46,745 bases of DNA from Octopus bimaculoides. Lineage: Eukaryota. Below are positions 5,761 to 46,745 of the stretch, piece after piece. The notes beneath the pieces are model-generated. The model had not been told where the DNA came from, searched no databases, and saw only the letters and a list, made by a program, of their open reading frames with translations. The stretch covers positions 47,798,000 through 47,844,744 of the forward strand of contig NC_068999.1 of the NCBI RefSeq assembly GCF_001194135.2, in the 5' to 3' direction. Every line of letters begins with the position of its first letter. Position 1 is the stretch's first letter. The position numbers and the translations under genes are program-made.

Positions 5761-7004
5761 ACTACTTTAGTTTTGCATTGGTGTATATTGGTATTTAAAA
5801 TATTCATGAATGTGTGTATGTATATGTATAGAGGCATGTATGAGCACATAAACTACACTCTTCCAATTTAAGTGCGCATAGGTATGTATGTTTGTATCCA
5901 TGAATATACATGTGTGTGTGTGAATGCACTTCTGTATACGTGTATGCACATATGTATGTAATTATGCATCAGGCCATGTCGTCTTCTCGCCTAAGTCAAC
6001 ACCATCCTTATTGGCAATCTTTCCCCACCAATACCACTCTCTTGGTCTGACCATCACAACCTCTCCCGCATAAATATGACAATCTCCCATACACAAACAC
6101 CATCCCCTCCTCTGATCATCACCACTGCATCGACATCATCCCCATCGTCTGATATCTCTCCTACACCAACAGAGTCCGCTCCATCTGACCAGGTCTCCCA
6201 TACCAACACCATCTGCTTCCCATATACTAACACTCTTCCCTTCACCTGTCCATCTTCCCACGCCAACACCCCTCTCTTCCATGGACCATTTCTCCCACAC
6301 CAACACCATCCCCTTCATTTGACCATCTCCTCCATACCAACACCATCTTCATCGACTGACCATGCATCTCACACTAACAACATAATCTTCCTGCAATCAT
6401 TTTGATATAACAAACTGGTTTGCTATTTCATCGACAAATCTTGTACTTAAGAATGATAATCTTCACTTGACAGAACACGACGCACGTTTTAATTGCTCCA
6501 ACATTTTGTATAAATTATTTAAAGAAATTGCCAGTCCGAATGAAAATTATATTTTTAATGAATAAGGCTCTTTTGTCTGAAGTAGCAAAGAAAAAAAACG
6601 ATATATAAAAATGAGAATCATACAAACGTAACAGTTTAACTGGAATTTATACCTTGTGGTAATACAACTAGATTAGAAACCATTTAGCGGTGTTTGACTT
6701 GATTTTTCTTATTGTTTCTGGACGGGCAACATTTAGCGAAAGTAATTATTTCCCTCGCCTCTGCCATTGAAAGGCATTCAACACGGAATTGTGATATCAG
6801 TCGCTCTGAATTAACCAATCTTAAATAATTGTGGCAGACGTATGAGCAAAACTGAGTTAAGCAATGATCTTTCTTAATTTTGGCAAGATGGTTCAAATCT
6901 GTTTTCACTATTTCATTATCACGACGGAAAGATATTCATTATACTTAAAATTTTGTGTTAAGCAACCTGTTTTAGTGATAAATTCTTATAATATAGACGT
7001 CAGT

Positions 7005-7535: not shown

Positions 7536-8965
7536 CTTAACGTCCGCCTTCTATGCTGGCATGGGTGGGACGGTTTGGTAGAAGCCTGCACCAGACTTCT
7601 GTGACTGTTTTGGCAGGATTTTTACAGCTGGATGCCCTTCCTAACACCAACCACTCAGTGGAGTGGACTTAGTACTTTTTACAGCTGGGTGCCCTTCACT
7701 TTACAGTGTGGACTGGGTGCTTTTAAGTGGCACCTGCACTGACAGGGTCACCAAGTACTTGCAAGACAAAAAAAATCTCTTTTGAGAAGGGTGGGGACAT
7801 TGGAGAAGGTGATCTTGTGTCAGATGATGAAAGGTTATAGTGAGGCAGAGAGACAGAAACAGAGGAGGTACAAGGTTACTCGGCGAGAGAGAGAGAGGGA
7901 GGTGGGGAGAGATCAGGAATGAAGAGAGTAACAGGTGCAGTGCCGCAAAGGAAATACATGATTACCAAACCTGAGGGAAGTGCAGGAGGAGGGAGTGGGA
8001 GACAGCAGGATAGAGATGGTGGCAAAGTGCCGGGCATACTCAAAAGGGACGGGGATCAGAATATAAATGGGATGGTGAGTAAAGGAAGAGAGAGATATAG
8101 ATGGTGTACCCTTGGGGTTCGAACGTCGTAATATAAATGGCAGGTTATTGCGAGGAAGCGTGATTAGAGAGTGTAGACGGGGTGGGGCGAAAGNNNNNNN
8201 NNNAACAGGATTGGGAAGTGAGAGGTAGGCATAGTGTATGAAGGAGGAAATGTGAGGAAAAGAAGAGATGTAGATTAGTTTGTTGGGGTAGGGTGTGTGA
8301 AAAGTTTTCTTGATACGCGTGGGTGGACCACACAAGTCGGACTAGCGGATATCAATGATTCAGTGAGACAGGGCCAAGAGAGGATTGGGGAGTAAGTAGG
8401 AGATAAGCATAATGCATAAAGTGGAAATGCGAATAAGAGAAGAGATGTAGTTTCATTTGTTGTGGTAGTGTGTGTGTGAGAAGTTTTCTTGTTTGAGTTT
8501 CGCTGACGTGGGCGGGTCTTGTCAAGAAACTCATATTGCCAGACATCTCGGTCCATTGTCATTTCCTCTGCGAGGCCCAACATCATGAGATCGGTCCTTA
8601 CCAACTTCATCCACGTTTTCCTGGGTTTCCCTCTTCTGTGGGTACCATCCACTTTCAGTGATCGGCACTTCTTTATGCAGCTGTCCTCATTCATACGTAC
8701 CACATGTCCAAACCAACATAGTCTTCTCTCTTGCATGCTACATTTGATTCCTCTTATGCCCAACTTTTCTCTCAATACATTTGCACTTTGTCGTACATGC
8801 GCACTGATGTTGTACATCCAACGAAGTATACTAACTTCATTTCTCTCCAGTCTACGCATGTCTTCTGCATTCAGAGTCCATGTCTCACTACCATGGAGCA
8901 TAACCGCTCGCACACAAGCATCATACAGTCTACCTTTCACTCTGAGAGCGAGAGAGAAAGTCCAT
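7536..8965 (-). mobile_element. 5'-truncated RTE-clade LINE (ORF2 C-terminus, 3' UTR, (GAT)n tail)
   Basis: ORF 8275-8940: KGRLYDACVRAVMLHGSETW..RLCWFGHVVRM..RRGKPRKTW..DRDVW, the post-RT C-terminus typical of RTE. The 3' end ..CCATGCCAGCATAGAAGGCGGACGTTAAG is followed by (GAT)n at ~7505-7535. Related 3' fragments at ~23080-23470 and ~30640-31490. Confidence 0.9.
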
Positions 8966-9754: not shown

Positions 9755-10111
9755 AAAGCCGAAATATTACTACTTCTCTTTACATTTCCATACCTGTCGT
9801 CTCCTGCCTACATGAACTTCAAAGAAAACGCAGATTGTTCCATTGCGTGCGGTAATTTTTCCCTCTCCTGCTTCAAGCAATGTTTTACACATCTGAAGCA
9901 CAGCTTCGACCATTGTATCAAATACTGCAAATATTACATGAAGCAATGCGATTTCTTCTGCTTTTGTATAGATTGTAAAGGCAGCTTGCGGCCACCAAAT
10001 CCTAGACGATTCGTTTATACAAAACTAACTAAATCAAGACTAACTAAATCTCGAAAACCTTCAGAGGAAATATCTAATCTTTCTAAACCTAAAGGAAAGT
10101 CCTTGGAATAA
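9755..10111 (+). CDS. Probable terminal exon of a secreted cysteine-rich peptide precursor (family not recognised)
   Basis: Strong acceptor TTTCTCTTTGTTTCAG ending at 9754. 118 open codons: hydrophobic KAEILLLLFTFPYLSSPA, then 10 Cys arranged CX3C-X6-CX3C-X10-CX3C-X6-CX3C-X-C-X2-C, a dibasic RR and a basic tail. AATAAA at 10441. Confidence 0.55.
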   Translation, partial: KAEILLLLFTFPYLSSPAYMNFKENADCSIACGNFSLSCFKQCFTHLKHSFDHCIKYCKYYMKQCDFFCFCIDCKGSLRPPNPRRFVYTKLTKSRLTKSRKPSEEISNLSKPKGKSLE

Positions 10112-13044: not shown

Positions 13045-13970
13045 TCACACGAAAAACACTTTGTTAGCGGCTGACAAATATTCAGATGAATTTCGTTTCA
13101 TAGATGTCTGGGGTGAACATTCTAGTCTCGGTTTTAAGCTCATTATAAGGGGATTTCCGTCATGATCTGATGTGCACCATTTATGAACAGACATTGGTTT
13201 ACAGACATTTGGAAAATGTGGCATCAGAATACCAATATCAGATATCTGAAATTCAAGTTCAACGAAATATAATGGTTCGGGAATAATATGTGGAGGCAGT
13301 TGTTTGAGAACAAACTGTATGTCATAGTGTACTTGGTTGTCCACTGTAAACATACAGAAGTCATCTTGTTCGTATTCAGGAGCTGAATTCATAAGAACTT
13401 TGTAAAAGTTCACCATCGCAAGCCAATTGTCGTAGCTGACAAATAACATAAATCGCAAATGCTCTTTTCCATAATGTACACGACGAATTCCCCAGAGAGG
13501 ATAACCTTTTGAAGTACCATAGAATTCCTGCATATTATCGGAACAAAATTCTATTGCTTTTCTTTTGTCTATTCGTGATTGATGATAAAATTTCCACGGT
13601 TTCTGTTGAAAATAAAACTGAGCTTCCAAAAATCTTTGCTGAGTAAGCAATCCGTCCTCGAGTAAAAAAATCAAAATAGAAAAACTAGGCACAAAAACAT
13701 GGCGGAGACAATCTTGCTTTTTCAGTGAATTATTCTCGGAACAACGAGGACTTCTATTTTCTGATATTTTTATAATATGTAGATCAGAATCAAGAAGATT
13801 TATTAGCGGCCGATACAGTGTATTAAGCATATTGATTTGGCTGCTGTCGGCGAATATTTTAACTTCAAAAGGTAGAAATGATTCATAAATTTCGGTAGTG
13901 ATTATACTCGCGACTTCGGAACTGGAATCTGAACGACTCGAGCTTTCCTTCGAAGAATTCGAGCTAGCAC
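13045..13970 (-). CDS. FAM124: FAM124-family protein, main coding exon
   Basis: PLWGIRRVHYGKEHLRF, DDFCMF, DIQFVLKQLP, EFQISDIGILMPHFPNVCKPMS..W.TSDHDGN match the FAM124A/B core (LWAIRPVHYGKEIVRF; EFRVRDIGELVPLLPNPCSPISEGRWQTEDHDGN) as recalled. Acceptor TTTTCTTTCCGTTTTTAG ends at 13971, so the exon starts in phase 1. Confidence 0.9.
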
Positions 13971-14403
13971 CTAAAAACGGAAAGAAAAAAAAATTGTGTA
14001 ACTGTTGGCCATAAACCCAAAGTAAATAAAAACAAAATAAATGCAATTTAAATGTACACAACTATGAATAAAAATACAAAATACTTTTACATAAGAATCT
14101 GAGCGATTTATATAATTGTGTGCCTAAAACTAATTTCAAATATTTGTTGTGCCATTCCATAGATATAAATTCGCAAGCATAATGTGTTTGCGCACGCGCG
14201 CGTTTTGTATATTAATACCCGACACCTCCTCTACATCTTACCATTACATCTTGACAAAAATACGCACGTTATACATCACACGACAGCGTTATCACACCTC
14301 ATCCTCCCTACTCATGAATGAAACAGTCTAAAGTTATCAAGCACTATAGAAATTCTAAGCCTGCTAAGCATTCTGCTAATATTATTTACATCTGCAGTGA
14401 CGT

Positions 14404-26146: not shown

Positions 26147-26905
26147 TCACTCTTCTCCGTCGTCGTCTGCAACCCTGAGGAAGTTCTTGGCAGCGGTTTC
26201 AGCTTCTTCTAAAATATGTGTTGGTACAAGTTCATGTTTTCCACCAGTGTGTTCTCCAACCCAACTTAATTCCAATTCAAAAGCTTTGTCTTTGATTTCG
26301 TCGTGGACAACATGAATGATTTTAGCTACTTCTTTCACTACTTCAGTAATAGGCATATCCTTGGTCTTCAGCTTTTCGATTTCGGTTTTGGCTGTCTGGC
26401 GAGCTTTACCGATGGCGCAGCCGTAATATCCCCAAGATACACCGGAGGGATCGATCATGTAAAGTTGAGGATTACCTTGTTCATACGAGCCCATAATCAT
26501 ACTGACACCGAACGGACGCATGGAGCTGTATAGAGTGTAAGCATGGACGTACATGGAAACTCTGTTGGTAAGATACTTCAGTGGAATCGACTCTCCGTAG
26601 TTGTAACGATAATTAGCAGCTTCTTCACGAGATGTCTTAATTACATGACGAGCATCAGCTAACAGACCAGCAACTGCAGCACCAATGTGTGTATCAATGT
26701 TGAATATTCTCTTATTTGCTCCCACTTCGTACAATTTGGACCGCACAAGTTTCTCAACGCCGAACACAACACCGTCTTTGCCGCGAATGCCGATGGCCGT
26801 GCCGCTGTTCTCTACCGCTTTTTGGGCATATTCCACTTGGAATACACGCCCATCGGGTGAGAACTGCGATGCAGATAAGTCATAACCAGTACCGATGGAA
26901 CTCAT
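26147..26905 (-). CDS. PSMA3: Proteasome subunit alpha type-3 (alpha7), intronless, 252 aa
   Basis: [27 protein letters not shown] start, [49 protein letters not shown] and an acidic tail. True start is Met14 of the ORF track entry. AATAAA on the minus strand at 26004-25999. Confidence 0.97.
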
Positions 26906-26978
26906 TAGAAAGTAAATATGTACAAACCCAAGAAACAGCTTCACTGACGAACGTTAACAAAACTGCTTTATCACTTTG

Positions 26979-33340: not shown

Positions 33341-35172
33341 TAATGCATTTTCTATGTACTTTGACAATGTAAATAAATATGCTTCTGTATAAATTGAATT
33401 GTCTTTTTTATTTTCGTCATTTACAAAAGCATTGATGACTTTATGGTTCATCCCGTTGAAGGGAACGATGGGTTCTGCAATCAAATATCTTCCTTCCATG
33501 ATTAGTGGGGAACAGAGAATAGGCAGGAATCCATTGCTATCCAATGTTGTATGGGAGAATGTGCAGATGGACTGAGATGGTGGTGTGTGACAGAGAAGGT
33601 TACAAGGAGGCTAAGAAAGAATTGGGAAAGAATCAGCGAATAAAACATTCTTTTATTCTTTTACTCGTTTCAGTCATTTGACTGTGGCCATGCTGGAGCA
33701 CCGCCTTCAAGGGTTTTAGCCGAACAAATTGACCCCAGGACTTATTTCTTATACCTAGTACTTATTCTATCAGTCTCTTTAGCCAAACCACCAAGTTACA
33801 GTGATGTAAACAGACCAACATTGGTTGTCAAGTGGTGATGGAGGGGGTGGACAAACATGGACACTTAGATATATACATATATGATGGGTTTCTTTCAGTT
33901 TCCGTCTACCAAATCCACTCAGAAGGTTTTGGTTGGCCTAAGACTATAGTAGAAGACACTTGCCCAAGGTGTCACACTGTGGGACTGAACTCGGAACCAT
34001 GTGATTGGGAAGCAAGCTTCTTACCACATAATCCCATGGTTTCTCTGTTAATACAGTGATAAACATTAATAAAAACATTTAATTGATAGAAAAGAGAAGT
34101 ATAATTTTTAAAATAAATTTGATCATTTATTACTTTTTACAATTGAATACAAACTGTTTTAGTCAAAAGGTGATGGAACAAATGGAGACAAAGAAACAAG
34201 CTGCACTGCAGGCAACCCATCTAGGAATGTAGTGATCCAAAAAAAGAAAAAAAAATACAGTTGTGAGAACTTGTAGTGTTTCTACAACGATCTCTATTGT
34301 ACCAATGGCATGACTAAGAGCTTCCAGTCCATACTGTAAAGTCTTTGGTGAGAGGAAAAGTATCCAGTAGCAAAAAAAAAAACAAAAACAAAAAACAGAT
34401 TTGGCCAGTTATCTCTCTTTTCACGTGTGACAAACCTCTACGAGCTACAAGTAGTGACACATGTCTACGCAATGCCAGCCTTTTAAAATGTACATTTAAT
34501 AATCTTTTCTACTATAGGCACAAGGCCTGGAATTTGTGGGGAGGAGGATAGTCGATCACATCAACCCCAGTACTTGACTGGTACTTAATTTATCGAACCC
34601 AAAAGGATGAAAGGCAAAACTGACCATGGCAGAATTTGAACTCAGAACATAAAGACAGACGAAATGCAGCCAAACCATTTTATCTAGCATGTTTGATGGC
34701 TGCGAGCTCACTGCCTTGGGAAAAAAATGTACATTAAATAATGATTGACAGAAATGGTATCATCAGAAGGAGAAGTGAAGAAATAAAGTTGTAGTTACTA
34801 AACATTTACTACAAATAAAATCTTACTTTATAAATATATGATGATAATAATAATAATGGTTTCAAATTTTGCCACATGGGCAGCAATTTGGTGGGAGGGA
34901 ATGAGCTGATTACATCAACTCCAGTGTTCAACTGGTACTTATTTTATCGACCCTGAAAGGATGAAAGGTAAAGTCGACCATGGTGGAGATGGAACTGAGA
35001 ACATAGCGATGGACGAAATACCGCTAAGCATTTTGTTCAGCACACTAATGATTCTGCCAGCTCACCACCTTCCGTAATAATTATAATAATGTCATCATTA
35101 TTATTATTCAAAAGTTGTATGCTAATTTAATTAACATGGATGTTACTTGAAGTTTGCTGACTACAAGTCTTC

Positions 35173-35385: not shown

Positions 35386-36930
35386 TTATGCTACAGTATC
35401 AACAGAAAGGCTGTCTTCTTCATTCTGAGGAATGGTGAGAATATTCTTTTGTCTTTCATAATTAGACTGCCATTGTGCTATGGGAAAGATTTTCTCTCTA
35501 AAATGCCAGAGACTGAATAAAATTAGGATTGTTGCCACAGTAGAACATACACTAAGAATGACAACAACTAATGTTCTATTATGGTGTTTAGTATCGTAGC
35601 CATATGCTAATTTATGACAATGAAAATCAGAAGGCTTTAATGTCGAAACAGGTAGGTCCAGAAGATGCTTGGGTGAACGACAGCACAATGATTTTTGTAT
35701 GAAATTCTTTTTCTTATTACTAATTTCATTAAAAACATCTAGCAGCCATTGTGCATCACAATCGCAATCAATAAAATTTCCACTCAAGTCAAGAGTTTCC
35801 AAATTCTGCCAGGGAAGAAAATGTTTAGGAAATTTATATATTCCATTATTATTTAAATAAACAATTTTCAAAGCAGGTAAATTATAGAGTGCTTTTGGGT
35901 GTATGTATTTCAAAAGTGGGTTGAAAGCAATATGGAGCACTCTTAAATGGGTAAGATTAAAAGCTAGACCATCGATTTTTGTTAAGTCATTAAGATCGTT
36001 TAGATATAAAACTTCAAGATGAGATAAATTGTAAAACGAATTTGATGCAATAACACTTATCCTATTTGCACCAAGATTAAGTTTTGAAAGTTGTTCTAGT
36101 TGAAGAAATGCTTGTGTAGGTACAACATGTAAATAGTTTTGATTCAAGTCTAAGGATTCTAAAGAATTCTCAAGCCCGCTGAATGCTTTGTCTTCAATTA
36201 TTTTCAAATTATTATTTGCAATATTAATATCTGCAAGCATTGAATTATTATAAAAGCTATTATTGAGTAAATGATATATGTTATTACCTTGTAAGTTAAG
36301 AAACCGTAAATGTTTAACATTTTTGAAAGCTACAGTAGGAATAGTCGTCAATCTATTAGATATCAGATGCAAGCTATCCAATGCATAGAGACCATTGAAG
36401 GCATTGTCACTTATACTATGAATAAAATTCCCAGTTAGATTCAATTCTAGTAGTTTGGGAAAATACTGGAAAGTATTGTCGAGTAAAACAGTCAAATGAT
36501 TTTGACTTATATCTAAAGACACCAAGTTATTTAAACCATGAAATGTTTTGTTGCTTAGATTCGATAAAAGGTTATTCCTCATGATCAATGTGTGCAGTTT
36601 TCCCAGGTGCTCAAAAGAATTATCTTCAATATTGATCAAACCATTAGAGTTAATGTCGAAATATGTTAAACTGCTATATTGATGCAGATCAACATTTAAT
36701 TGCTTAATTTGATTGCCTCTTAGGACTAACTCTGTAATAAATTTAGGTGAATCAATATCATCTGGTATAATAGTTTTAAATGCATTTGAACAATCTAAAA
36801 GCCCAAAGTTTTTAAAACAATTACAGTTTTCAGGACAATGTACAGCAATACATACATTTCCAAATGTCATGAATAATAAAATTATCCTAGTTAAAATCAT
36901 TTTTTCAGACACCCAATCACCAGATCTCAT
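35386..36930 (-). CDS. LRR single-pass transmembrane protein, tartan/capricious-like
   Basis: Signal peptide (likely from Met11, MILTRIILLF), LRRNT CPENCNC..DCS, about 13 LRRs, and FLPWQNLETLDLSGNFIDCDC (cf. Caps/Trn LFPWKDLQTLDLSENPLSCDC). LRRCT, TM TLVVVILSVCSTVATILILFSLW, short tail, no Ig or TIR domain. Acceptor TCTTTTCAG at 37118 suggests an upstream 5' UTR intron. Confidence 0.9.
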   Translation of the reverse strand: MRSGDWVSEKMILTRIILLFMTFGNVCIAVHCPENCNCFKNFGLLDCSNAFKTIIPDDIDSPKFITELVLRGNQIKQLNVDLHQYSSLTYFDINSNGLINIEDNSFEHLGKLHTLIMRNNLLSNLSNKTFHGLNNLVSLDISQNHLTVLLDNTFQYFPKLLELNLTGNFIHSISDNAFNGLYALDSLHLISNRLTTIPTVAFKNVKHLRFLNLQGNNIYHLLNNSFYNNSMLADINIANNNLKIIEDKAFSGLENSLESLDLNQNYLHVVPTQAFLQLEQLSKLNLGANRISVIASNSFYNLSHLEVLYLNDLNDLTKIDGLAFNLTHLRVLHIAFNPLLKYIHPKALYNLPALKIVYLNNNGIYKFPKHFLPWQNLETLDLSGNFIDCDCDAQWLLDVFNEISNKKKNFIQKSLCCRSPKHLLDLPVSTLKPSDFHCHKLAYGYDTKHHNRTLVVVILSVCSTVATILILFSLWHFREKIFPIAQWQSNYERQKNILTIPQNEEDSLSVDTVA

Positions 36931-41900: not shown

Positions 41901-42314
41901 GTGTTTTTATTTGTATCCCCATCACCACTCGACAGCTGGTGTTGGTTTATTCATGTCCATGAAATTGAGCAATTCAACGAAAAGACTAATACAATAAATA
42001 CCAGACTTTAAAAAAATAAGAATTAGGATCGATTTGTTCGACTAAACCCTTTAATGCGGTACCCCAGCATGGCTGCAGTACAATGACTGAATCAAGTAAA
42101 TGATTAAAAGAAATAAGGAACAACCATGATGTATTAGAAATATTTTATTTTCATAGCGAATAATCTGATCATCGGAATATTTCACAGATTCTAATCAAAC
42201 GATGCGTATATAGTAAAATTTTCTTTTCGGATATTTTCGTGTCATAATATTGGTTATCCTTTAGTGATTGGTCAACTTATTTTCCACCATAAAGCCTTCA
42301 ATTGTCCAACAGAT

Positions 42315-42329
42315 TTAATTTCCATTACC
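42315..42329 (-). CDS. aos: Argos-like gene, terminal coding exon (GNGN*)
   Basis: Strong acceptor TTTCTTCTCATTTTCAG ending at 42330, phase 0, TAA at 42317-42315, AATAAA at 42149-42144. Confidence 0.6.
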   Translation of the reverse strand, partial: GNGN

Positions 42330-43258
42330 CTGAAAATGAGAAGAAACAGAAAATGAAAGTTTACAAACAAATAAACATATTTTCTATTTATGAATCGCTG
42401 TAGTCTCTATTTTAGAACCCAACACTTGTAACTCGAATAGTGGACTAAGCTGGGTGAGGGTAAGCCAATGGGTATGTAACTCTTAGTGAGTTAGGGCTTG
42501 CCTACTTATGCATGTGAAGACCCGGGCTTTTGTTGAAAACGCCCAAGGTGTCACGCAGTGAGACCGAACCCAAGACTGCATGTTTGGAAAGAAAGTTTCT
42601 TATTCACACAGCTATGTATGTGGAAATATATTTCTAAATATTCCTATATTTATGTTTTACCTTTGATCTTTTACTTCTTTCAGTCATTAGAATACGGTCA
42701 TGCTAGGGTACCACTTTAAAGAATTTTAGTCGAACGAATCGATCCCAGTACTTATATTTTAAGACTGGTATAAGGACATTAACACATTAATACCGGTTGT
42801 CTCACACACACACGACTAGGTTATTTCAGTTTCCGTCTACCAAATCCACTCACAAGGCTTTGGTCATCCCAAGGCTATAGTAGAAGACACTTGCCTAATT
42901 TGCCACGCAGCAGAACTGAACTCAGAACCATGTGGTTGGAAAGCAAACTTCTTACCACGTAGCCACGCCTCAAAATTTTGGAATTAAAACAGAAATTTTT
43001 TCCAACAATACAATATCACAATCTTATTTTTCAAGCGGAATACAATGAATAACAGTGGTCTCAGTGCCTGGTTGGTGCTATTTTATTAATCCTGGAAAGA
43101 AGAAATCCTGCGTGGGATTTTAATTCAGAATATAGGGAAATAAAGTGGAGTTTCTTTTGTCATGAACAAGACATACAGTAACATAGCAGTGAGTAGAACA
43201 GTTTTAAAGTCAACAACAAAAAAATAGATTTGGTTACGAACAATATTTGCTTACTTAC

Positions 43259-43381
43259 CGGAATGTTGCAAGTATAATGGTGCACAACATGGTTTGTAAC
43301 AAAGTGGGTATTACCATATTTCACTGATCGATTGAAGGGACCGGGCAGGGATTCAAGGTGATGAGGGCATAAGCATTTCAC
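43259..43381 (-). CDS. aos: Argos-like gene exon (VKCLCP...HHYTCNIP)
   Basis: TTTTATCTTCAG| 123 nt, phase 0-0, |GTAAGT. VxCxCP...YxC matches Argos domain 2 (IVHCRCP...YLFACSP). Confidence 0.8.
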
Positions 43382-44494
43382 CTGAAGATAAAATAATTTT
43401 GATAAAGTTTGCAGATGTAATACAAAATGAGATGTTTTATACATAACAAATGAGTTTTATAGTAAACCACCCATCCCAGAAAAAGCCTAAAGCTTGTAAC
43501 AAGACTATTTGACAGGGTTCCATACACCAATCTACAGTGAATCAAACGAATCACTGTTTTCAAACACAAAACGTAAGTAAATAATACAAAAAGGATATCA
43601 ACAAGCAACTGTCCATTCAAATTTTTGGTAGAAACATGAATGTCATTAACAATTTTGTCTTCGATGCCTTTTATTTGACGTCTAATGCTCTTAGCTTAGA
43701 CTTTTTTGGGGGGCAACCAGATCGAACCATCTCAAGTGTAACTGCCCGAAATGGTCGTGACGTGACTTCTGGGACTTGACTGATGAAAGAAAGCCAAGGA
43801 TGACCCGTCTTTTTTTGCCTGTCCTTCTAATTGTTGTTTCTCTTGTCCGCCTTTGTATCGTCTTTCTGTCCGGACGTTTTAATGCCCTCTGCTGCGTTTC
43901 ATTTATATTTGTTCCATATATATATATATATTATATATATGAGTGTGTGTGTGTGTGTAATTTTGTTTATCTGTTTATGTCAGTTATTACAGTCCAGCCA
44001 ATACCAATGCCTGCATGAATTTAAATCAGTCAACTTCGGCTACATAAGTGAGTGACTGTTACAGTCTACTGTTATTGTGACCATACAGATCTCACGCGAA
44101 CTGTAGCACTTGGGGCAGGTATCTCTCTTTTATAGTTCGTTGCAAAGACGACATTTTTTTTTGTTAACGATAATAAATAGCTTTTGTTTGCAACTTTTCA
44201 CAGACATCTGTTCTTCCATCTCTTAACTCTACCAAAATATTTTATTGTTACAAGGTCATACATACATAAGACGGGCTTCTACACAGTTTCTATCTACTAA
44301 ATTTACGTAGAATGCATTGGTCGACCTGGAGCTATAGTAAAAGACACTTGCCCAAGGTGCAGCGTATTGGGATTGAACTAGAAACCGCGTGGTTGCAATA
44401 CAAGCTTTTTAACTACACAGCCATGCCTGCATCTCAAATTGATAACTGCCAAGTTATAGAAAGTTGTGTTACAGATTTGAAATGTTTTACTTAC

Positions 44495-44603
44495 AGTCGT
44501 GTAACTAAACAAGTCAAATTTTTTGTCCTGGAGATGAACTTCGTGTGCCGTCTGGTTGGGGCGACATTCTGTCAGGCTCGCTATCGGTTGACACAACTGT
44601 AGC
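44495..44603 (-). CDS. aos: Argos-like gene exon (K-LQLCQPIASLTEC...YTT)
   Basis: CATTTCAG| 109 nt, phase 2-0, |GTAAGT. QLCQPIASLTEC resembles Argos KMCQPVHKLPVC. Confidence 0.82.
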
Positions 44604-45848
44604 CTGAAATGACATTGAAACTTGTAATAAGTAAAAGTAATGAAGGCGTCATGTAGCTTAGGGGTCGGCAAACCGGGTTAAATTACCCCAAGCAGGGTAA
44701 AAATGAAATTCTTGGTAACGGGGACTCATTAGACATAAGTAAAAAACGTGTTGCTACGATAGAAAATTTTTCTTCTGGCAACATTGCATCTGTCCAATGT
44801 AATGGACTGTAAACAGATTCAATAAACCTTTTGAATTCAAAGAATCTATGATTTTCTTCCTTTCAAATCAAGGGGGTAACGTCAGCGTGAATAGATGTAT
44901 TTTGGGGGTAATTGGTTACAAAAGTTCCCCGACCCCCTGGAGGGTATTCGGCTGACAATCGTAAGGCCGAGAGTTGAGTCTTCGAGCAAGACACTTTATT
45001 TCACGTTGCTCCATCCAACTCACCTGGCAAAAACGAGTTGTACCTGTAATCTAAAGGGTCAGTCATGTCACATTCTGTGTCACACTGAATCCTCCCTGGG
45101 AGCTACGTTAAGGATAAGACTGTTTGTGGCGTGCTCCGCCACTTGCATGTTAATTTCACGATCAGGCTGTTCTGTTGAATGGGTCAACTGGAACATTCGT
45201 GCCAGTTTGTTGAATGCGCGTGGCCTAGTGGTTAGGATGTTGCAAGGGATTGGTAAGAAATAAATATTGTCTCGAGTCCTAGGGCTCATGGAGCCAGATT
45301 CTAAGATTCCATCGTGTTTAAGTTACCAGGGCCCTGAACGGGACGTCAGTCTGTTGCAAGGTGGATCACTTGCAACTGAGTGGACTGGAGCAAAGTAAAA
45401 TGAAGTGTTTCGCTCAAGAATACAACACACCACCCAGTCCGGGAATCGAAACCTCGATCTTGCGATCACGAGTGCAACATCCTAACCACTAGGCCACGCG
45501 CATTCAACAAAACCTGTACAACTTAAGGGAACAAAGCTCTGTTCCTCTATTTAGGAACAGCACAAGGTTCAGCTATCACATTCCTTCTTAGAAACCAAAT
45601 AATCATTCTTAGGATTTGAATTCAGAAGCTAATGGTAAGTGGACGAAATCAACTAACTGACCCCCACTGCTGAAATAATATGGTACCAGCCTTATCTTAG
45701 ATTTGTATGAAGAATAATTTATATGTAATTATCGTTTAATTAATTAATCGTTGATTTAAGAAAAGATATATTATCTATGAAACAATTTCACTATTATACC
45801 GTAATTAACAACAAACATAACAGGTTTTCAGATTAAAAACATATTTAC

Positions 45849-46024
45849 TTGTGTTTGGATGTATCATATATAATGTGGTTCGTCGAATTTGGGCACTGTC
45901 CTCCTTGACACAGACAGTTGATAACTCGGCGTTCAGTTTTTTGCCTTTTTCCATTTACTGTCTTGGTGAATGAATAGACGTCGGCACAAACAGTACTTTC
46001 ACTCAAACATGGAGAGCTACTTCG
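45849..46024 (-). CDS. aos: Argos-like gene exon (RSSSPCLSESTVC...CLCQGGQCPNSTNHIIYDTSKH)
   Basis: TTTTCTTATTTCAG| 176 nt, phase 0-2, |GTAAAT. Cys spacing and CPNS..HIIYD.SKH resemble Argos domain 1 (GCPSS..GHTIADKTRHY). The signal-peptide exon was not found in the window. Confidence 0.8.
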
Positions 46025-46079
46025 CTGAAATAAGAAAAGTATGACTTACGTTGACGAAAAGAAGAAAATTGGTCATATA

Positions 46080-46560
46080 TAAGGTGTGTCCTAAAACAGA
46101 ACGAACTTTTAAAACGGTGCGGTAACCTTCTGGTGCAGCATGCTCATGATTGAATACGGTTGGTGTTTATCTTAAGTCTAATGACAGCCAAGCCACGCTC
46201 ACGTCAGATAGTAATCGATCCACTCATGCTAGAATGAATGTATGTTTAGAATAATTGGCGATTTGCAGTAAGAAGAGCAGTAAAAGACCAGAAAATACAA
46301 AATGCTTGTGTGAAATTCAATTATAAATCGGGAAAGACTTTAACAAAAGCTTTCCTCATGTTGGGTGGAAGGATTGTTTGAGCTAATGCATGCAATGGTA
46401 CAAGTGATACCAGCGTTTCAAATCAGAAACCACCACTGAAGAGAGTATTCTAAGTCCAGACGACCTTTCACACTAACGACCGACGATCACATTGTGATAC
46501 ATGCTGTAACCCGTTAAAATCATCGTCATGAAGTTTCTCGTGGTATTTGCCAAAGATCGT
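46080..46560 (+). mobile_element. Degraded mariner transposase N-terminal remnant
   Basis: ACVKFNYKSGKTLTKAFLML and QW..RFKS...RRPFT.TTDDH resemble the mariner HTH region (CIKFC.KLGKTATET..ML; W..RFK.G..SGRP.T). Confidence 0.7.
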
Positions 46561-46745
46561 GCCCCGTGGTTTTAAAAGAAAGTTTTCATATGTTTCTTTT
46601 GTTGTATGATTTGTTGCGTTTGTTGACAGAGGAATAAAGAGAACAGATTCACGGGCAATCAGGAGCTGTTTGATTGTTTAAAAAACCGATGAAAACTTTC
46701 TGCAAAATGTCATAACGAATGCCGAAGCGAGGTGTATGACAATGT

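Follow-up and report, generated by a model that had tools for sequence, protein, structure and literature searches.

What is encoded on the minus strand of an octopus chromosome where a list of open reading frames (ORFs) shows only fragments, and is the product truly a shortened relative of Drosophila Argos? This question is raised by positions 42140-46024 of a stretch of 46,745 nucleotides of Octopus bimaculoides DNA (contig NC_068999.1), called the window in the following. From the letters alone an earlier note had proposed here a hidden gene of four exons for a protein resembling Argos (giant-lens), apparently lacking domain 3. Argos is the classic case of a secreted antagonist which traps the ligand and does not block the receptor, its domains 2 and 3 being the two jaws around the EGF ligand Spitz. 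To our knowledge, no relatives of Argos outside the insects were known for years. We find that the region holds exons 2-5 of the annotated gene LOC106877028, and our analysis supports that its product is homologous to domains 1 and 2 (D1 and D2) of Drosophila Argos. Very probably the octopus protein is a two-domain Argos-related protein with the fold that was named "two-finger toxin (2FTX)" by Khilji et al. (Protein Sci 2025, PMC12514838). With regard to identity and architecture we hold this, with good confidence, to be the best explanation of the locus; the functional part we infer.

Relationship to Argos

The full product has 175 amino acids (aa) and consists of a predicted signal peptide of 24 residues and about 150 further residues, among them ten conserved cysteines arranged as 6+4. 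A family profile built from 27 sequences gave a single significant match in the PDB, namely "Protein giant-lens" (3C9A/3CGU, Drosophila Argos, E=4e-8), and aligned profile positions 39-143 to residues 27-123 of the chain (3c9a_A), which correspond to D1-D2. A weaker second match of the profile placed the D1 motif CxCPxxxxCP onto the equivalent motif of Argos D3 (chain 168-193). With hhalign the comparison to Argos reached a probability of 96.9% (E=2e-10, 27% identity over 84 columns). The arrangement of 6+4+6 cysteines that the earlier note had given for Argos was confirmed on the PDB sequence (chain 27-217). In the profile alignment each of the first nine Argos cysteines has one counterpart among the octopus cysteines:

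Octopus Cys 41, 48, 72, 74 and 79 with Argos chain Cys 29, 35, 50, 52 and 58, respectively
Octopus Cys 98, 107, 133 and 135 with Argos chain Cys 80, 89, 114 and 116, respectively

A structure model of the octopus protein was calculated with AlphaFold2 from the family alignment and without templates. The model has a pLDDT (predicted local distance difference test) of 92.7 and a predicted template modelling score (pTM) of 0.82, and it shows four beta-hairpins with strands assigned by DSSP to residues 46-58/61-70, 86-88/93-97, 112-120/126-131 and 150-158/161-168. In addition there is a helix at residues 8-23, within the signal-peptide part encoded by exon 1. When the model was compared by Foldseek with 350,542 PDB chains, four matches were obtained at E<=0.001, all of them Argos entries (3c9a, 3cgu; E 1.4e-6 to 7.5e-6, probability 1.00) with TM-scores of 0.54-0.58 over about 155 columns. 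The next match was uPAR, which is not significant (E=0.17, TM-score 0.15). A model of a gastropod member, calculated from an alignment of six sequences, had a pLDDT of 41 and was not used. The reading as an Argos relative with a 6-Cys and a 4-Cys domain is thus supported because the profile match and the match of the predicted structure point to it independently of each other.

The octopus protein is presumably secreted, as Argos is, and shares with it the homology over D1-D2, the 6+4 cysteines and the motifs C-x-x-x-AVC, CxCPxxxxCP, MCQP/LCQP and CxCP(R/H). It differs from Argos in that D3, which has six cysteines in Argos, is missing and hence there is no C-clamp, and in that it has neither the long, flexible N-terminus of Argos nor, in D1, the insert of 119 residues. 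The identity between the two proteins amounts to about 16-27%.

Several points weigh against the assignment. To see the link to Argos, a family profile or a structure model is needed: a Pfam scan of the 140 aa encoded in the window, for which a profile match had been suggested as a check, found no family even at E<=10, the relatives likewise have no Pfam match, and a phmmer search of the PDB with the single sequence returned only noise (GLD2, GABA-A receptor, E>0.09) and no Argos. The tenth cysteine pair (C168 of the octopus protein and C143 of the Argos chain) has a similar spacing and lies just outside the local profile alignment. The ten octopus cysteines agree with those of Argos D1-D2 in homologous position, and the five Argos-like disulphides are putative. 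The gene model is based on two annotation pipelines and on cross-species conservation.

The two-domain architecture as such is not new. Khilji et al. solved the structure of the macro-conotoxin Tx33.1, which matches Argos D1-D2, and collected about 1800 protostome 2FTX proteins, molluscan ones included, in twelve sequence clusters; the two-domain ones are the two clusters A and D (PMC12514838). Two-domain Argos-like proteins had thus been published in 2025, together with the same argument on the loss of D3. The octopus protein is therefore a new conserved member of a published class, and the class as well as the functional argument are already in the literature. In the literature that was searched with the gene and protein accessions, no paper mentions the octopus protein. 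A signal peptide, two two-finger domains behind it that correspond to Argos D1-D2, and the lack of D3 are features which it shares with the two-domain 2FTX proteins; these comprise macro-conotoxins (Tx33.1/MLSML, MMLFM and others), turrid proteins and the CLANS clusters A and D. At the sequence level, the family profiles matched only Argos in the PDB and not Tx33.1 (9FRQ), 9FRQ was not among the best 50 Foldseek matches, and a database search with a gastropod profile returned uncharacterized gastropod proteins only and no named conotoxin.

The earlier note had also mentioned Argos-like folds from centipede venom. In substance this link is backed by the literature: kappa-scoloptoxin Ssd1b is an Argos-related 2FTX protein outside the insects (PMC12514838). 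By its description the centipede protein differs from the octopus protein in having three 2FTX domains and in its origin from the venom gland.

Gene model and absence of domain 3

The four proposed minus-strand exons were borne out in all details, that is AG/GT splice sites, compatible phases (0-2, 2-0, 0-0, 0-stop), a 140-aa product with 10 cysteines and an AATAAA signal behind it. All four acceptors consist of a pyrimidine tract followed by CAG, and the donors of the first three exons read GTAAGT or GTAAAT. It is also correct that the bacterial-style ORF list contains merely intron-contaminated pieces of the locus. The gene is, however, neither hidden nor a four-exon gene because it is annotated and because its first exon is situated beyond the end of the window. 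Over their whole length the 140 aa match residues 36-175 of XP_014781295.1 / UniProt A0A0L8GGM5 (Octopus bimaculoides, 175 aa) with 100% identity; at NCBI the locus LOC106877028 is labelled "uncharacterized protein" and UniProt holds the identical 175 aa. Exon 1 was located at 48327-48223 in window numbering, i.e., 1478-1582 nucleotides past the window end at 46745 (CM046619.1), and encodes residues 1-35 (MITKLAHPRWICFLILLFVGEVFC QSQAVVYEQAQ), comprising the putative signal peptide and the strand with which the fold begins. When the gene was reconstructed exactly from protein to genome, it turned out to have five coding exons (105, 176, 109, 123 and 15 nucleotides) with intron phases 0, 2, 0, 0 and GT-AG borders throughout. 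The parts inside the window are, in the order of transcription:

46025..46745, minus strand: 3′ part of intron 1 (the full intron has 2198 nucleotides; exon 1 is outside the window)
45849..46024, minus strand: coding exon 2, 176 nucleotides, entering in phase 0 and leaving in phase 2; residues R36-H93 plus the first two nucleotides of the K94 codon; the greater part of domain 1 with Cys 1-5 (C41, C48, C72, C74, C79); family-profile E=1e-18, blastn 73% to Argonauta
44604..45848, minus strand: intron 2, 1245 nucleotides, GTAAAT...TTTCAG
44495..44603, minus strand: coding exon 3, 109 nucleotides, phase 2 to 0; K94-T131; C98 (last cysteine of domain 1), C107 (first of domain 2) and the first beta-hairpin of domain 2; family-profile E=1e-9
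43382..44494, minus strand: intron 3, 1113 nucleotides, GTAAGT...CTTCAG, with the second copy of a repeat like a short interspersed nuclear element (SINE) at 44284-44411
43259..43381, minus strand: coding exon 4, 123 nucleotides, phase 0 to 0; V132-P171; the CxC motif (C133, C135) and the last cysteine C168, i.e., the remainder of domain 2; family-profile E=9e-11 and a blastn match to Argonauta
42330..43258, minus strand: intron 4, 929 nucleotides, GTAAGT...TTTCAG, with a SINE-like repeat at 42827-42954
42315..42329, minus strand: coding part of the terminal exon, 15 nucleotides, GNGN and the TAA stop codon (42317-42315); counterpart of the short tail exon at the C-terminus of other members, in which gastropods have an additional cysteine
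42140..42314, minus strand: putative 3′ untranslated region with AATAAA at 42149-42144 and a presumed transcript end

In a six-frame scan of the window with the family profile the three larger exons were the sole significant matches. The possibility that one deals with chance ORF fragments or with a pseudogene is negligible in view of the very low exon-wise E-values, the identical 175-aa protein in NCBI and UniProt, the intact frames, the intron positions conserved between species and a rate of nonsynonymous change far below the synonymous one.

Copies of the dispersed SINE-like repeat, which has a tRNA-like head, are present in introns 2 (about 45420-45500), 3 and 4. Related copies were seen at about 33887-33975 of the window and, outside synteny, in the locus of Argonauta. 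No tRNA was called by ARAGORN in this region; the intron repeats are of the SINE type.

Domain 3 is truly absent from the octopus protein, as had been claimed. The protein terminates 7 residues after the last cysteine of D2, and the same C-terminal end is found in the orthologues of O. vulgaris, O. sinensis and Argonauta and in a 167-aa relative described below. No true family match from the four mollusc classes has a D3; all end soon after the tenth cysteine. A possible alternative terminal exon encoding D3 was looked for at the locus and not found. A scan for cysteine-rich ORFs from the stop codon to the next gene, an LRR gene at 36930-35386, yielded only translations of (TG)n microsatellites, and the six-frame scan, in which the D1 motif also recognises Argos D3, gave nothing significant besides exons 2-4. 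With Argos D3 as query tblastn hit at the locus only the D1 exon, and this weakly. A marginal profile match at 38297-38151 (E=0.09) was considered as D3 and rejected, being a stretch with three cysteines in which the motif is absent and which has no counterpart in Argonauta. In the blastn comparison with the syntenic locus of Argonauta, conservation was confined to the coding exons, to the genes for the LRR protein and MMgT and to dispersed repeats; from the stop codon up to the next gene the two loci had no conserved block in common.

The family in molluscs and its possible function

A word-indexed search found only the octopus protein itself and its orthologue in Argonauta hians, a protein of 177 aa with an identity of 67% across the 140 aa and of 62% across the whole length. 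A profile search of 1.84 billion representatives gave 26 clusters at E<=1e-3, one of which, a repetitive protein of 828 aa, was discarded as spurious. The true matches are 150-280 aa long, in most cases with a hydrophobic N-terminus. They share the cysteine pattern C-x6-C ... CxC-x4-C ... C | C ... CxC ... C and the motifs xAVCAD, NCxCPxxxxCP, CxP and CxCPxH, and some gastropod members have one or two extra disulphides (N-terminal Cys with C-terminal DPC, NGTxC with CEPxC). All named members are molluscan and are labelled uncharacterized or hypothetical:

Chitons: Liolophura
Bivalves: Crassostrea, Solemya, Mercenaria, Ruditapes, Mactra, Dreissena, Pinctada, Potamilus, Sinanodonta
Gastropods: Haliotis, Patella, Gigantopelta, Elysia, Pomacea, Babylonia, Nucella, Physella, Bulinus, Bradybaena, Littorina, Aplysia, Batillaria
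Cephalopods: three Octopus species, Argonauta

The suggestion of a cephalopod variant is therefore wrong; the two-domain family spans the Mollusca. A relative of 167 aa, 53% identical to the octopus protein and ending in CNSGD, was present in 74 short-read assemblies on contigs of 1-2 kilobases (kb) with an uninterrupted coding sequence. These contigs are most likely transcripts, and from the gap between the score of this relative and that of the next match (2e-56 vs 1e-18) we infer that it stems from another cephalopod.

The first three introns are conserved in position and phase (0, 2, 0) in Octopus, Argonauta, Solemya, Dreissena and Babylonia. They follow the signal-peptide exon, precede the sixth cysteine by 4-5 residues and precede the xCxC motif by one residue, respectively, and exon 3 measures 109 nucleotides in four of the five species (Octopus, Argonauta, Solemya, Babylonia). 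Octopus and Argonauta add to this a phase-0 mini-exon, Dreissena has exactly four exons (0, 2, 0), and Solemya and Babylonia have the phases 0, 2, 0, 1. The protein is under purifying selection as an endogenous protein and does not show toxin-like diversification: between Octopus and Argonauta the proportion of nonsynonymous differences (pN) is 0.21 and that of synonymous differences (pS) 0.75, the synonymous sites being saturated, and the 175-aa proteins of O. vulgaris and O. sinensis fall into the 90%-identity cluster of the octopus protein.

Two peculiarities of single members may be added. Intron 1 of the Argonauta hians orthologue has a GC donor (GCAAGT, locus position 10109) in place of GT. 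In Dreissena polymorpha three alternative signal-peptide exons (80-100% identical; locus positions 6001, 24234 and 33363) precede one set of mature exons, which fits the labels "isoform X1/X2" in several bivalves.

What could such a protein do? The octopus protein would be a secreted, extracellular and rigid protein-binding module stabilised by disulphides. As D3 is absent, it should not be able to entrap an EGF domain between two jaws in the manner of the Argos C-clamp. More likely it would contact its partner, perhaps a growth-factor-like ligand or the ectodomain of a receptor, with one face, as single modules of the Ly6/uPAR type do. The latter (three-finger proteins such as uPAR and the ectodomains of TGF-beta family receptors) are likewise small disulphide-rich modules of beta-hairpin fingers which bind protein ligands; the octopus protein differs from them by having two fingers per domain instead of three and by lacking a glycosylphosphatidylinositol (GPI) or transmembrane anchor. 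Any particular ligand or role which one might name for it is doubtful at best.

Among the alternatives, the one which keeps the protein closest to Argos assumes that it still antagonises an EGF ligand, with D1-D2 sequestering the ligand by another geometry, e.g., as a dimer or in concert with a partner protein. The homology extends over D2, which is one jaw of the ligand clamp in Argos, purifying selection fits an endogenous signalling role, and a possible modulation of EGFR signalling by protostome 2FTX proteins is put forward by Khilji et al. as a speculation (PMC12514838). According to the same authors, however, the binding of Spitz by Argos relies on D3, so that two-domain 2FTX proteins would need another binding mode. 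Moreover, gastropods also carry three-domain Argos-like genes beside the two-domain family. These endogenous proteins (Aplysia XP_005110430.1; Pomacea and Conus in PMC12514838) are secreted, conserved and not venom components and have the 2FTX fold, as is true of the octopus protein, but their D3 is encoded on a separate last exon and their intron phases are 0, 1, 0, whereas the octopus family has no D3 and the phases 0, 2, 0, followed in some members by 0 or 1. In Aplysia and Pomacea two-domain members (LOC101853874 and LOC112555418, respectively) coexist with three-domain genes. The two kinds are therefore paralogues, and the canonical Argos role is probably taken by the three-domain paralogue. 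We consider an EGF antagonist of this sort unlikely.

Octopuses possess venomous posterior salivary glands, and the protein might be a toxin of the venom or saliva that corresponds in cephalopods to the two-domain 2FTX conotoxins. Indeed the gene organisation is the same: in the conotoxin genes, too, the signal peptide has its own exon, the mature part is divided among three further exons with the phases 0, 2, 0 (PMC12514838), and the exon borders are independent of the domain borders. The octopus protein has ten cysteines, against twelve in these conotoxins, and an extra short terminal exon. Conotoxins are hypervariable, whereas the octopus protein is under strong purifying selection (about 62-67% identity to Argonauta, at least 90% to O. 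vulgaris and O. sinensis) and has orthologues in non-venomous chitons and bivalves and in grazing gastropods. In addition the gene is present as a single copy in the window and not in a tandem toxin array, and the searches described above gave no match to the Tx33.1 entry at the sequence level. A toxin is thus still less probable than an EGF antagonist.

Finally, the protein could be a full three-domain Argos orthologue whose D3 exon was missed or is used in an alternative isoform. The place for splicing in such an exon is plausible, since a phase-0 intron three residues past the last D2 cysteine is followed by an exon of only four codons, and the three-domain mollusc genes carry D3 on their own last exon after a phase-0 intron. 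Against this, neither intron 4 nor the 5.4 kb before the next gene contains a D3-like ORF or conservation with Argonauta. The terminal exon of Argonauta also has 15 coding nucleotides (KKEN*). Solemya and Babylonia possess a longer tail exon at nearly the same place and in phase 1, that of Babylonia with an extra C-terminal cysteine, and Dreissena has none. Because a short tail exon is found in Solemya and Babylonia and is thus ancestral, the four-codon exon is not the scar of a lost D3 exon. The transcript-sized contigs of the 167-aa relative end without D3 as well. A missed D3 is accordingly very improbable, and the two-domain secreted module without Argos-style entrapment is what we retain.

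The similarity of gene organisation leads to a further, tentative thought. Khilji et al. left open the ancestor of the 2FTX toxins because their three-domain candidate has the intron phases 0, 1, 0, in contrast to 0, 2, 0 in the toxins (PMC12514838). The two-domain family described here has its signal peptide on exon 1 and the phases 0, 2, 0, with positions conserved from bivalves to cephalopods, and it occurs in neogastropods (Babylonia, Nucella). Being endogenous, two-domain and of phases 0, 2, 0, it is the better structural candidate, and it is possible, though we would not put it higher than that, that it represents the endogenous lineage behind the two-domain 2FTX macro-conotoxins (MLSML, MMLFM and others). 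Since no link to conotoxins was found at the sequence level, this stays a lead. If it were true, the loss of D3 would predate the Conoidea, probably even the divergence of the mollusc classes, and would not be part of the recruitment into venom.

Octopuses, and molluscs generally, thus keep a conserved, presumably secreted protein which consists of the D1-D2 half of the Argos trap alone. It offers a clean natural test of the action of an Argos-type module in which the second jaw is missing, and a well-behaved comparator that is not a toxin for the 2FTX conotoxins, of which it is possibly the ancestor. A modest practical gain is that, for dozens of mollusc genomes, the label "uncharacterized protein" can give way to "two-domain Argos-related (2FTX) secreted protein".

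Neighbouring features of the window

The other features observed in the window are the following:

35386-36930, minus strand: next gene downstream, a single-exon gene for an LRR protein of 514 aa (LRR_8, E=1e-53) with a cysteine-rich LRR C-terminal cap and one transmembrane helix
32315-33340, plus strand: exons which the gene calls of the chromosome record assign to a membrane magnesium transporter (MMgT, PF10270), with two blocks of 86-92% identity to Argonauta
26147-26944, minus strand: uninterrupted ORF of 265 codons for a complete proteasome alpha-type subunit (PF00227, E=4e-52, and the alpha N-terminal signature); the true start is likely MSSIGTGYD
13045-14061, minus strand: ORF of 338 aa that contains a FAM124 domain (E=3e-58) and probably represents one large exon of a FAM124-like gene
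8275-8940, minus strand: ORF of 221 aa (…LYDACVRAVMLHGSETWTL…RLCWFGHVVRM…), probably a decayed retroelement

The gene order Argos-like gene, LRR gene and MMgT gene is the same in Octopus and Argonauta hians. The proteasome copy is intronless in an intron-rich genome, which suggests a retrocopy or a truly single-exon gene. The 221-aa ORF has no Pfam match and resembles the C-terminal tail of the reverse-transcriptase ORFs of retrotransposons.

Runs of N, i.e., assembly gaps, are located at about 2.7-3.4, 4.4-4.9, 15.3-15.9, 23.8-24.8 and 29.7-29.9 kb of the window. The window also contains many (TG)n/(TA)n microsatellites, which give rise to spurious cysteine-rich ORFs of the type "CVCVCV".

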